Positions 16,907-58,670 of a DNA stretch of 64,000 bases are shown one piece after another. Below the pieces are notes generated by a model. That model saw nothing but the letters and a program-made list of their open reading frames with translations, made no database searches and was not told the DNA's origin. Source of the stretch: Trichoplax adhaerens (lineage: Eukaryota; Animalia; Placozoa); NCBI RefSeq assembly GCF_000150275.1, contig NW_002060954.1:124001-188000 (forward strand), read 5' to 3'. Positions within the stretch are counted from its first letter, which is position 1. Every line of letters starts with the position of its first letter. Both the position numbers and the translations under genes were made by a program.

Positions 16907-18981
16907 CTACATCCGTTCATCTTCCGCCGAAGTGTCCTAGGTGGATAAGAAACTGTACTTTATTATACGATTTTAAATTGTAGTGGCTAGGTGTTTTTAA
17001 ACTTAAAAAATTCGAAACTGTACTTATTTGAAAACACTTGATGGTAGTAGCTAAGAGTTTTTAACTTTAATTAAAATAGATACAGTACCATGTTTACGCA
17101 CTTAATAGTAGTAGCTAGGCGTTTTTAACTTTACAAATTCTAACCTTCCTTCCGCCACAGCATGATCCACTGTGCCTGCCTGCACAGGAAGCTGCAATGC
17201 CCGCACATACTACGGCAACAACGGAAAGTGCTAATGCCATCATTAACAATGCTAATTGAAGCCCTTCATAATCTGCTGTAGTGTATTGGTATACGATGAT
17301 ACCTATAGTTATTGTAGATACCATTACGACATATGATGAAAGTGCCATGAAAGCTGTCTCCTGGAAAAAAGTCAGACAATTCAGGTTATTCAGAATCTAC
17401 CCTGTAAAAATGAGAGTAACGATTGTTTTCTCTCACCACTTGCTCTGATCTTATATCAGCGGCATTTATTCCGAACCCGCCCGTAACACACAGCTATGAT
17501 TGAGAAATTTTGAGTTTATAATAGAATTTTCCCATATATTATTATGAATAGAAAATTTAATTTCTAAATGGTAAATTACCAAGCAAGCTAAATAAATTGC
17601 CATTGTTACGTGTATCTTGAAAGAAATTGTAAGTAGATAAATTAAGCCGATCAACAGTAATGATAGCCCATTAATAAGCATCAGGCAGCCTAATCTAAAA
17701 TTAATCACATCATAGATATTCCTCGACAGATAGGCTTTGCCGAAAGACCAACTTTGGATTCTTAATTGGCGCTCAACTGCCGTAGTTGTATATGAAGTAG
17801 AAATTAGGCAGTATATCGTAATTGAAATGAGTGGACAGTAAATTCCGAAAACGTTTGAATTAACTCCATTATAGTAAATTCTGCGGGTAAGTTCGTAAGT
17901 TGAATGAGTTATTGCCATAATAGTAACAGTTCGACATAACCTTGAGGTAACAAGAAACCATACAAGCTATACAAAACAATCAAGGGCGATTGCATAAGTC
18001 TCTTAAAATAACTGTGTTTATTTTGATTTAACACAAAATTCAATAAACTTACTACTCCTGGCTTCCTCCTTTTCACTTTTAGTAAACCGAGGTAACTGCT
18101 AGACATGAACTACGTTCACAAATAAAATTTAGAGTAAAAAAATCCAGTCACGATAACAATTGATTGTTTATGACAGGCATTTTGATTTACCAAAATGGCA
18201 TCAATGACTGCAAAGGAAGCGAAGTGTCCATCCAACACGAAAATGCTGGTAATACCTATTATGAATAGCAATACGCCTCCAACGCCTTGCATAATAGCCA
18301 TTTTTATTTCACTTTTATGACGAACATTGATCGTTGTGGCCGTGGTGACCGGACCAACAAATGATTTTGCAATTACATTGGCTTGAAATGCTGTCATACG
18401 AGAAGTACTGTAACGGCAGATGTTATCTAAAATTTTCACATTATATAGAATTGCACTCATGCTGGCTATGAAACAAACTATCGCTAGCGCACAAATAATT
18501 GGAGGCATTACAAATGAATTTGTCGTGTTCCTATGTACAATATTTACAACAATCACGTAACCGTAACGGACAACATCCACGCAGCAATAAAATCCGGATA
18601 TTACTGAAAATGTTACTATTCCAGTTAGCTAAAAAGATGGAAAAGTAGAATACGTGTAAGAATATACATTAAAATATAATGTGCCCAAATTGTGGTTACC
18701 ATTGCACTAGTCGCTCGTTTCCTTGAATTTATACTGCAAATCCCGGATGTAAACAACTATTACACGAAAGAAAAATTTCTCAGGTGCTATCTCAAAAACT
18801 GATAAAACTTCACATACAGATTCCATACCGCAGAACTTAAAAATCCTGTATATATCATGTTATGATTTGAAATTTTCATTTGAGGTATTGGAGCCATAGC
18901 CAGAGAAACAAACATACCGATAACTTCTATTAAGCTGAGTATTACCTGGCTATAGCCGATTAATAATGCCATCTTTTCCAT
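16907..18981 (-). CDS. 12-TM protein built from three tandem tetraspan (MS4A/CD20-like) modules, paralogue 1
   Basis: Exons 18981-18829, 18756-18700, 18628-18191, 18109-18053, 17966-17580, 17493-17437, 17360-17145, 16936-16907. All are phase 0 with GT-AG introns and give ~464 aa with no stops. The three short exons are each exactly 57 nt (LFTSGICSIN.., FMSSSYLGLL.., LCVTGGFGINAA..). Cys-rich tail ASCAG..SCCG. The family assignment is by eye. Confidence 0.75.
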
Positions 18982-19598
18982 TACAAAAATAATTTCGTAT
19001 TATCAGAAATCGTTTTCGAAAAAGTAAGATAAAAACAATATATTTTATTTGACTTCGGTCTTCGAAGAGCGTCTGTTCATATATAAAAATTTGTTTACTT
19101 TCACAATCTGGCTTAAAAGTGATGTCATAAAAGTTTATAAATAGCCATCAATAATACCAATCGCCTCTACATGCGCACATAGATACCTTTAAAACAAAAC
19201 TTTTTTTATAAAAATTAAGAACTTGAGGGAAGCCAAGTGTTTACCTCTACTTGCAGGAAATAAGTGAATTTGGACGGAAATTGCCAAATCACTATTTTTA
19301 ATGAGAGACTTCCCAGAACATCGACTGTTTTTTTAAGTTTTATTCAGTAGTCCTCATTTGAGTAGAAATCTAAACAAATTCTGCAAGAGACATTAATCGC
19401 GAATTTCGTTATTTACAGTTGATCGTATGTTCCCATCAGAATGCTTTAAATATAACATTAATTAATCTCTGGATAAGAAATTGGAAGAGGTTTGTAAAAT
19501 TAGCACGTCGTGGTCGAGTCATAACTATCCTGATCAGTTTTTGCATCTACGGAAGATATTGGGTGTTCTTTTGATTGTTATACTTGCATCCTTTGGTC

Positions 19599-55647: not shown

Positions 55648-55712
55648 CGAGAAGTAAAAAATTTTTTTTGGTTAGTACATCACTGTGCAAGACTTATGAG
55701 TACAGCATATCA

Positions 55713-58670
55713 ATGGCGATGTCTTCTACAGCAGTAGCTGGAGCGTCTTTGATGATATTTGGTCTTGGCGATGTTGCCATTTCAATTCTTGTCACAGTTG
55801 ATATCAACAGTACGATTCGTTATTATGGTTCGATAAGTTTTTTATTGATGATTTCTTCAGTATTAGGAACGTCGGTAAGAGCCTTAAGTTAATTTTACGC
55901 TGTATAGGATTGAACGCTGTAAAATATTGAATCCACACTCGTAATATCAAAATAGATACTTTACTGCATTAAATTAATTTTACGGTGTATAGGATTGTCA
56001 AATTGTCCTAGACAGAGCTATAATATTGCAATCGGCAATATTGATGATGTATTGTACTATTACAGTATAGCGCTAATGTTACAGACAGCTCATAATTATC
56101 AACTTGCTTACGAAAGTTAATGTTCGTCAAGGTTTGCTTATAAAATAAAATAGTATCTCTGTCCATTGCTTTTATTATATGCTGTATGGCTCTTTAAACC
56201 ATACATATAACTTCTCCGATTACGTTTTAACGTATGCTTATAGTGTACAGAGTAGAATGCGTAGCCAGATGAAAGTGATTACTGTACTTATAATTATTTA
56301 TATATATATATATACGGTATAAGATTGCACACTTATCGGACTCAATACTTTAAATAGATGATACTAGGTGGCCTTATGTGCATCATTCAGCATCGATTTC
56401 ACAAGGGAATGGCGGTAGGAAAACGTTATTCATACGATTGTACATATGACAGTTACTTTTTTTACGTTCACGCAATGTTAGTAAAGATTATACGCGTACA
56501 GTATGTGAATTAATTATATGAGTATACTGTAGCTACGGTATAATGGTATACGTATACAATTAAATATTTAGAATCTGAATAATTAGCTATTAGATAAAAA
56601 ATTCTTGATGGAAGGCTAGATATGAAGTCATCTTTTGCTATATGACTGGATTTCTATTAGGTTATTTCCATCTTTACCATGATGTTGCTATCTCTGGTGT
56701 GTGTAATGATTTCTGCTGTTTCATTTACATATTACTATGCGAGGCTGCCAATTTATACCTTGATGACATCACGTTCGGTGGCCTTATTTGCCCTAAGTGT
56801 GTTCTTCCATATGAGTTCGTTCATAATTCTTGCTTATTCGATCAAGAAACAATCTCTACAACTGTCTGATTTTGGTGAGCAACGTCGAGAACAAGATGAA
56901 CCGTTAGATGCCGGTGGCCGTGTTGAAACAGCAGAAAGTATGAACCCTATCACTTTTAGGCATCCAGATCACCAAAGCAACTTACTCGTAATTTTATTAT
57001 GCGTTATTGGTGGATTAATGCTGTTTACAGGTCTTGCAGATGTTTTCATCTTGCAGGGACTTTACGCTACACAGACGTGCCTGACTGGAATATTTGTATG
57101 TATTTAACACTTTACTAGTATACAGTAACAGTGCTATCATACTTTAATTACTCCTACAGCATTGAATATATGTATCAGTTAGTATAATCGTATTAAAGAG
57201 ATTAAAAGAAAGAAATTTCTCTCCTATAAAGCCTTTCAATGAAGAACCTTCTGATTTTCTTTATTAACTATTGATCCTCATTTTCTCATTAGTAATGTGA
57301 TTTACAGTAGTTGCAAAATTTTGTTTTATAGCTGTTGCTAGCTGCTGGATGTGGTTATTTACATGAAATTAGACACATCAATGGCGCAGTAAGTATCTAT
57401 AACAGTCGCTACCGCATGTTGAGTGATGCTCTGCTTTTAATTTATATGTCGGAAGTTAGTATCATGAGACTGCTAAAGGACTCCATCCGACATGAATGTC
57501 CGCGCTATTTAGTTAAGAATCTTATTTTTCTAATGCCTCTGAATGTCTTTCATTTTACTTTATTAGGCAGCCTGGTCTTGTGTCTTTTTTTACATTAGTC
57601 GATTAATATCTATTGCTGCAATTGGGATAAATATTACAATTTTCACAAATGTCCGCGCAACATATCTAAATTATCATTTCAGCGCCCTTGCAGTTTTTAT
57701 ACTTTCAACGATTTTTATGGCAACTGGATTTCTATTATCGGTTTATGCTGCATATGTATTTAAACTTCGAATTAATAAGCAAACAGTGCATATTTGCCCA
57801 ATTTGTTTAAATGCAAGCAACTCTTCGCTTCAACTAGTCTTTGTTTGGACCGGCCATTTTCAATTCCTTTCAGGCCTGGCACTATGGACCGTAGGCCTGG
57901 CTGCTATGATTTTCAATATATTTGAGCATTCCTCTCTACATACTTTCTATTTAGCGAGTTTGGTAAGTAAGAAGTACGTACAATATTGCTCGCTACGTAG
58001 TAATTTACTGTGAAGCTTTTTTGTATGTTTGTGGAAATATAACGGAAGAAAGGAATATCATACGCGCTTGCAATTAGTGATATAATCTGGAACTCGTTGT
58101 GGCTACTACAGAATTAATTTTAGTGGATAAAATTAGTTATAATGTGAAATTTAGAGACTGTATAATAAAATTTGTTTGGTATGTACCTCTTTAGTTACTA
58201 ACAACTTCAAGATTTGCGTCTGCAACGAATAAAAATCAGTCTGAGGTTAGTCCTCTTCAGCTTTAAAGTTATCGTGTCGTGGTAATAAGTAAATCTCACT
58301 GCACTATTTTCTTTGCTTGATAGAATGCGGTCTACATAACTATGCTATTTTTTTGTATCTTGGCATCCGTAATGGAAATCGCCTATATTGTAACCGGATA
58401 TGGTGGATGGAACTCGATTAATTCGGTACAATGGCAATCTTCTTCAATTCCAGTAATTTTTTCGTTGGCGTTATCAGCTATCGCCTTCATAGGGTGCTTG
58501 GTATCTACTTTCAAAGTTTATCAATATCAAGGGTTTGCTTATTTCAGCAGAAACGTAAGAACTAATACATCTATTTTAATTTCATCCAGTATACGTAACA
58601 GTCAATCTTATCTCGTTTTCACAGCACTGTATATCAGATTGCTAAATTTTTACAGGATACGTTATTTTAA
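55713..58670 (+). CDS. 12-TM triple-tetraspan protein, paralogue 3
   Basis: Exons 55713-55874, 56358-56414 (57 nt), 56661-57095, 57332-57388 (57 nt), 57567-57962, 58195-58245, 58324-58554, 58656-58670. All phase 0, ~467 aa. VIGGLMLFTGLADVFILQGLYA aligns with paralogue 1 GVGGVLLFIIGITSIFVLDGHFA; YLASL| aligns with YLACL|; the last mini-exon starts with DT in both genes. Confidence 0.75.

Follow-up and report, generated by a model that had tools for sequence, protein, structure and literature searches.

Placozoan 12-helix membrane proteins that probably join three diverged CD20/MS4A-type tetraspan modules in a single chain

Proteins of the CD20/MS4A type (PF04103, the family of MS4A, TMEM176 and sarcospan) are medically important, and their mode of working is poorly understood. 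Vertebrate MS4A genes follow a plan in which the second transmembrane segment (TM2) is split between two exons, one of them short. Some of the encoded proteins act as chemoreceptors (PMC11026480). In chicken, opossum and platypus, Zuccolo et al. 2010 described long MS4A genes made of two or six units in tandem, which they took as support for oligomerisation (PMC2826416). Another system to be considered is MLC1 (PF27925), an astrocyte membrane protein with eight transmembrane segments and cytoplasmic ends, which forms trimers and is conserved among vertebrates (PMC8633789). Here, these systems are compared with three genes of the placozoan Trichoplax adhaerens, located in a stretch of 64,000 nucleotides (nt) (G000:C1403:124001-188000, the window), each of which encodes a chain of 12 helices arranged as three four-helix units.

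The three genes exist in the window at the places, and with the three-unit architecture, that an earlier reading of this DNA (the original prediction) had given them, being backed by exon models, by RNA in the case of genes 1 and 2, and by a sister-strain protein in that of gene 3. They probably represent a diverged placozoan family in which every 12-helix chain contains three CD20/MS4A-type tetraspan modules, derived from an ancient fusion or triplication. Their public protein names are TRIADDRAFT_59673 (gene 1), TRIADDRAFT_59674 (gene 2) and TRIADDRAFT_59681 (gene 3), and our models encode 464, 444 and about 490 amino acids, respectively, with a pairwise identity among the three paralogues of about 22%. 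No paper naming these genes was found, and literature searches on the gene names, on Trichoplax together with MS4A, and on a 57-bp MS4A exon gave nothing useful.

The gene models were obtained by reading three stretches of the window in three frames and choosing GT-AG junctions; all the junctions of the resulting models are GT-AG and in phase 0. Database searches of genes 1-3 were run exon by exon, the full-length query being the database protein P0001 (TrispH2_000269, 490 amino acids, from the sister strain), while the spliced sequences were used in local hydropathy, alignment and decoy tests. Each gene contains three times, as had been claimed, the unit [TM1-TM2a] / 51-60-nt phase-0 exon / [TM3-TM4]. 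Thus, exon 1 encodes TM1, a loop and the first half of TM2, and is followed by a short exon; the large exons encode TM3-TM4, a charged linker, and TM1 plus half of TM2 of the next unit; and, after exon 3, the order continues with a short exon, the second large exon, the third short exon and an exon with the last two helices. In gene 1, and probably also in gene 3, the C-terminal tail comes from one further small exon at the end. The short exons measure 57, 57 and 57 nt in gene 1, 60, 51 and 57 nt in gene 2, and 57, 57 and 51 nt in gene 3, so that six of the nine have exactly 57 nt, in agreement with the original prediction. The exons are listed below with their support (L004 and L006 are loci orthologous to genes 3 and 1, respectively, in other placozoan samples).

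18829..18981, minus strand: gene 1 exon 1, start codon, TM1, loop and first half of TM2 (model; joint 18756/18829 in 3 runs)
18700..18756, minus strand: gene 1 exon 2, 57 nt, phase 0, second half of TM2 and basic loop (model, RNA joints)
18191..18628, minus strand: gene 1 exon 3, TM3-TM4, linker, TM5 and first half of TM6 (model, RNA; orthologue exon in L006 73% identical)
18053..18109, minus strand: gene 1 exon 4, 57 nt, phase 0 (model, RNA joints)
17580..17966, minus strand: gene 1 exon 5, TM7-TM8, linker, TM9 and first half of TM10 (model, RNA joints)
17437..17493, minus strand: gene 1 exon 6, 57 nt, phase 0 (model, RNA joints)
17145..17360, minus strand: gene 1 exon 7, TM11-TM12 and Cys-rich juxtamembrane tail (RNA joints, translation)
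16907..16936, minus strand: gene 1 exon 8, final 9 codons with the stop codon (joint 16935/17144, cut +1, in 4 runs; translation)
19599..19748, plus strand: gene 2 exon 1 (model, RNA joints)
19825..19883, plus strand: gene 2 exon 2, phase 0, 59 nt in the assembly and 60 nt in RNA (letters at joint 19748/19833 in 4 runs)
19966..20385, plus strand: gene 2 exon 3 (RNA joints)
20477..20527, plus strand: gene 2 exon 4, 51 nt, phase 0 (model, RNA joints)
20865..21257, plus strand: gene 2 exon 5 (joint 21257/21346)
21346..21402, plus strand: gene 2 exon 6, 57 nt, phase 0 (model, RNA joints)
21511..21714, plus strand: gene 2 exon 7 with stop (model, RNA joints)
55713..55874, plus strand: gene 3 exon 1 (model, sister-strain protein P0001)
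56358..56414, plus strand: gene 3 exon 2, 57 nt, phase 0 (model, public-model match)
56661..57095, plus strand: gene 3 exon 3 (model; same-length orthologue exon in L004, 56% identical)
57332..57388, plus strand: gene 3 exon 4, 57 nt, phase 0 (model, public-model match)
57567..57962, plus strand: gene 3 exon 5 (model, public-model match, L004)
58195..58245, plus strand: gene 3 exon 6, 51 nt, phase 0 (model, L004; contained in P0001)
58324..58554, plus strand: gene 3 exon 7 (model, public-model match)
60367..60450, plus strand: gene 3 probable last exon, acidic tail and stop (both public models)

RNA contigs from four runs, belonging to four studies, were placed on positions 16500-22400 of the window, which hold genes 1 and 2. 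Every modelled intron of gene 1 corresponds to a contig joint with CT..AC ends (GT..AG on the minus strand); the terminal intron, 16937-17144, is seen in RNA, and the last exon ends at 16907. All the modelled introns of gene 2 are also observed as contig joints, which shifted two of its donors to 20385/20386 and 21257/21258. In addition, one contig (record 15 of run X6) runs across gene 1 from exon 8 to exon 3 and another (record 8 of run X12) across gene 2 from exon 1 to exon 5. Taking into account that single RNA contigs cross several modules, the transcripts are fused and the units are not separate genes. Both genes are spliced and transcribed, and each of their introns is confirmed by RNA.

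Other details had to be corrected as well, among them an irregular junction in gene 2 and the end of gene 3. In 4/4 runs, nine RNA letters lie between 19748 and 19833 of gene 2, which equal the assembly letters 19825-19832 plus an extra G. This extra G after 19832 makes exon 2 an ordinary phase-0 exon of 60 nt and the assembly one base short; without it, the gene is frameshifted. The missing G is probably an assembly error or, otherwise, an allele of the sequenced strain. As regards gene 3, exons 1-7 match P0001 exon by exon, with 90-100% identity. Its end had been placed at 58670, and an ending at 58656-58670 has canonical sites and no other support, whereas the exon at 60367-60450 has a good acceptor and a stop and is the final exon in both public models. 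Thus, the gene probably ends at 60450, and not at 58670. A further correction affects the size of the family, which had been taken to have three members.

It has to be noted that the public models of T. adhaerens are shortened (TRIADDRAFT_59673, 209 amino acids; 59674, 271; 59681, 320), as is the sister-strain model of gene 1 (TrispH2_000261, 290 amino acids). These models skip exons and hide the 12-helix architecture, which is displayed only by the sister-strain model of gene 3 (TrispH2_000269).

Genes 1 and 2 are arranged head to head, their start codons being separated by 617 bases (18982-19598), and RNA contigs start or stop near 19023 and 19232. This divergent arrangement, together with the position of the contig ends, suggests a shared bidirectional promoter. 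Contigs containing the 3' end of gene 1 run on for more than 1.7 kb below 16500, which would reflect either a long 3' untranslated region or overlap with a neighbouring transcript. Intron 4 of gene 2, which is long, contains a joint used as a minor alternative (20744/20865) in one run, X5.

The original prediction had counted about 12 hydrophobic segments per protein. Hydropathy gives four peaks per module in all three genes, and secondary-structure assignment with DSSP on both AlphaFold2 models of P0001 recognises 12 long helices, the fourth and the eighth being followed by long stretches without helix. By these predictions, one chain is made of 12 helices, laid out 4+4+4. When the N-terminus is placed inside, lysine plus arginine account for 12.5% of the predicted inside loops versus 5.3% of the outside loops, an excess in keeping with ends and linkers that lie in the cytoplasm. 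This side of the membrane is accordingly predicted for both termini, the linkers and the basic loops between TM2 and TM3. In gene 1, the tail carries a cysteine cluster that adjoins the last helix and could be a palmitoylation site.

The Trichoplax assembly that was searched comprises 105.6 Mb in 1414 contigs, with a G+C content of about 33%. A search of this genome with a single exon matched the query exon itself and nothing else. A three-row profile built from the exon 3 copies of genes 1-3 located a fourth paralogue on another scaffold (G000:C1411:4145248-4146421; L007:2481-4640), so that the family has at least four loci in Trichoplax. The 57-nt exons of this paralogue (L007:2481-2537, 3317-3373 and 4176-4232) occupy the same positions as in genes 1-3. 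It is nearest to gene 3, and its exon 1 was looked for and not found. Hidden Markov model (HMM) scans of all the open reading frames of the window detected no further member there. The family is conserved across placozoan lineages: in other placozoan samples, the orthologous loci have retained the exon plan and are 52-89% identical. Among them, L004, the orthologue of gene 3, contains exons 1 and 3-7 (52-64% identity, with an exon 3 of equal length and a 51-nt exon 6), while L006, the orthologue of gene 1, contains exons 1-3, including the 57-nt exon 2.

The relation of these modules to the CD20/MS4A type can be approached through the CD20-like genes of Trichoplax itself. The Pfam CD20 profile (PF04103; curated cut-off 27.9 bits) gives three weak first-exon matches in the genome (L001-L003). 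The first exon of L001 reaches an E value of 1.9e-4 and matches no other family. When a profile of the three first exons was compared with 177,635 PDB sequences, only CD20 chains were retrieved, with weak E values of 3.4-8, in an alignment that is collinear and ends at the exon end. The CD20 signatures of TM1 and TM2 (G-A-I/V-Q and P-x-W-x-G) are present in L001-L003, as they are in human CD20. The gene plan was read in L001 and in L011, a fourth CD20-like gene. L001 consists of an exon a ending in the middle of TM2, a 57-nt phase-0 exon, and an exon c with TM3-TM4, and L011 has the same order with a central exon of 60 nt, whose peptide is very similar to that of L001. The CD20-like genes of Trichoplax are thus four in number, two of them in tandem 4 kb apart (loci L001-L003 and L008-L011: G000:C1409:5090390-5094872, C1408:3618841-3618999 and C1411:7354653-7354781). 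Upstream of one of them, at L003:400-1100, the translations reveal a repeat unit of about 90-130 nt that looks like a minisatellite.

The modules of genes 1-3 resemble the CD20/MS4A type, as represented by L001 and L011, in having four helices per unit, predicted cytoplasmic ends, a basic TM2-TM3 loop, and a phase-0 intron that splits TM2 and is followed by an exon of about 57-60 nt, to which a weak, above-decoy sequence similarity can be added. When the L001 core was aligned locally and without constraints to each of the nine modules, the short exons coincided at offset 0 in four of them, and in a fifth module 17 of the 19 residues of the L001 short exon fall inside the short exon of the module. 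Aligned together by MAFFT, the nine modules and L001 have the start of the short exon at a single column in 8 of 10 rows. (A different MAFFT alignment, made with single exons of genes 1 and 2, was discarded because the fragments were stacked on one module.) Profiles of the first, second and third modules (positions A, B and C) score 19.6, 7.3 and 7.2 bits, respectively, against the L001 core; hydropathy-preserving decoys reach those scores in 0/1000, 14/1000 and 27/1000 cases, and the score of a nine-module profile against L001 is reached by 2/1000.

Language-model features point in the same direction. In the ESM Atlas, P0001 obtains 0.87 with MLC1 (177 shared features) and 0.85 with CD20, while its residues 1-150, corresponding to module A, obtain 0.84 with both, all these scores being below 0.9 and hence leads only according to the tool. 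The best named clusters are in every case CD20 or MLC1, for the whole protein as well as for module A, and some Atlas clusters bear both Pfam labels. MLC1, the best feature match, also has several helices and cytoplasmic ends; it differs in having 8 helices, versus the 12 predicted here, and the likeness is one of language-model features. Taking together the exon plan, the aligned introns, the above-decoy profiles and the Atlas features, it seems quite likely that the modules share ancestry with the CD20/MS4A-type tetraspan.

Several results weigh against the proposal of a triplicated CD20/MS4A-type chain. The Pfam CD20 check suggested in the original prediction was negative: at E values up to 10, nothing matched among the exons, the nine front halves (TM1-TM2a), the partial models and P0001 at full length. 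More generally, Pfam scans of exons, half-modules and P0001 gave only chance-level matches, and a PDB sequence search with P0001 returned antibody chains only, at E values of 0.28 or worse, which is noise. The TM1/TM2 signatures mentioned above are absent from all nine modules, and the Trichoplax chain also departs from the CD20/MS4A type in its three units and its short extracellular loops. Among 1.84 billion representatives, the exon 3 profile retrieved five proteins, all of them placozoan, which are models or fragments of genes 1-3 or of their orthologues from other placozoan samples. The AlphaFold2 models of P0001 have a mean confidence (predicted local distance difference test, pLDDT) of 36.4 with a 3-row alignment and 40.1 with an 8-row one, which makes them unusable for comparison with the CD20 fold. 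The 2010 survey found invertebrates to be without MS4A-like genes and warned that short transmembrane similarities can be convergent (PMC2826416). Lastly, under a null in which residues are shuffled within 8-residue windows only, so that the hydropathy profile is kept, modules at different positions show no likeness beyond hydropathy (mean z 0.4, none above 3), and global hhalign P values are 0.26 for A-B, 0.069 for A-C and 0.0009 for B-C.

With the same null, modules at the same position in different genes have a mean z of 3.4, with five of the nine pairs above 3. Since same-position modules are alike and different-position modules are not, the triplication would be older than the gene duplications, as the original prediction had proposed. 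The data fit this order of events, which rests on the exon plan and topology and not on direct similarity between positions. The position-specific motifs that had been listed in its favour stood in part, several of them holding in just two of the three genes. As regards the CD20/MS4A link that the same prediction had drawn, the exon plan, intron alignment, decoy tests and Atlas features speak for it, while the Pfam match and the signature motifs are missing.

Taking these objections into account, the family could instead be restricted to placozoans and truly triplicated, its unit being unrelated by descent to CD20/MS4A and its likeness, which consists in the topology, the small residues of TM2 and the presence of a short exon, either convergent or due to another tetraspan lineage. 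This explanation would account for the lack of Pfam CD20 matches and of HMMER relatives outside placozoans, for the Atlas scores below 0.9, and for the fact that positions B and C exceed the decoys only at p of about 0.01-0.03; it also agrees with the convergence suspected for invertebrate MS4A likenesses (PMC2826416). It leaves unexplained that two intron positions and their phase coincide with those of the Trichoplax CD20-like genes in unconstrained alignments, that the position A score was reached by 0/1000 decoys, and that the best named Atlas clusters are all CD20 or MLC1, so that we regard it as rather unlikely. The shared intron positions also argue, without proving it, against the absence of MS4A relatives in placozoans, a question on which the four CD20-like genes of Trichoplax bear as well.

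A chain of 12 helices and about 460 amino acids is, on the other hand, typical of transporters of the major facilitator superfamily (MFS), and MFS clusters do appear among the structure-search matches of the Atlas; in that case, the chain would be built as 6+6, and the 4+4+4 layout would be an artefact of the exon structure. This possibility, which the original prediction had asked to be examined, is very improbable: the TM-scores of those matches are only 0.26-0.31, no MFS Pfam match is found on the exons or P0001, the long hydrophilic linkers follow helices 4 and 8 and not helix 6, and the exon unit occurs three times, not twice. The Atlas has its own model of P0001, with a pTM of 0.75, and the only good structural neighbour of this model is a cluster of nematode hypothetical proteins of about 828 amino acids (TM-score 0.67 over 452 aligned residues), which are unnamed, have almost double the length and are assigned to no Pfam family. 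A further alternative, that of the original prediction, is that the three modules could be packed with pseudo-three-fold symmetry and have a pore or ligand site at the centre, the family then being one of lineage-specific chemoreceptors or ion channels. The chemoreceptor activity of some MS4A proteins (PMC11026480), the homotrimer reported for MLC1 (PMC8633789), the top Atlas feature match, and the divergence of the paralogues (about 22% identity, as in many receptor families) would be in keeping with this proposal. However, the tandem MS4A genes known so far comprise two or six units, and were interpreted as pointing to dimers or multiples of dimers and not to trimers (PMC2826416). A three-fold unit of this kind appears improbable.

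Under the preferred explanation, that of a fused chain of CD20/MS4A-type modules, a CD20-like gene would have undergone an ancient in-frame fusion or triplication, which is the likeliest origin, and gene duplications would have led later to at least four loci. Each of the three four-helix modules, joined by charged linkers, would retain the gene structure of the CD20/MS4A type, with a phase-0 exon of about 57 nt set between the part for TM1 plus the first half of TM2 and that for TM3-TM4. The whole chain would act as a counterpart, with fixed stoichiometry, of a tetraspan oligomer. Given that vertebrate tandem MS4A genes are known (PMC2826416), such a fusion of units is not unprecedented, and the placozoan three-unit family is a variant of it. 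In both cases, several MS4A-type units lie head to tail in one polypeptide; the vertebrate genes have two or six recognisable, young units, whereas the placozoan ones have three very old, position-specific units.

As for the role of these proteins, analogy offers some guidance. MS4A proteins and MLC1 form oligomers through which other membrane receptors and ion fluxes are organised or modulated, and for this reason a function as membrane organiser or regulatory subunit, and not as transporter, is tentatively put forward as a possibility. A function as chemoreceptor seems unlikely, and a pore of their own is still harder to credit. It is similarly doubtful that the superfamily predates Bilateria with the placozoan chain of three non-equivalent units acting as a pseudo-trimeric receptor or ion-conducting unit; if this were true, the chain would be a natural concatemer showing the working stoichiometry of the CD20/MS4A superfamily and of MLC1.

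Two other features of the window deserve mention. An open reading frame at 5462-6088 (plus strand) encodes a full paired-box (PAX) domain (E 3e-68) and presumably corresponds to a placozoan Pax gene, and two adjacent open reading frames at 37009-38429 (plus strand) encode the two halves of a rhodopsin-family seven-transmembrane receptor (E 5e-22 and 3e-12).

The shortened public gene models have a practical consequence, in that expression atlases built on them may misassign reads. In evolutionary terms, the introns shared with the placozoan CD20-like genes would put the tetraspan unit deep in animal evolution. If the proposed explanation is true, the triple-unit genes would be natural concatemers of fixed stoichiometry, suitable for structural and functional study.

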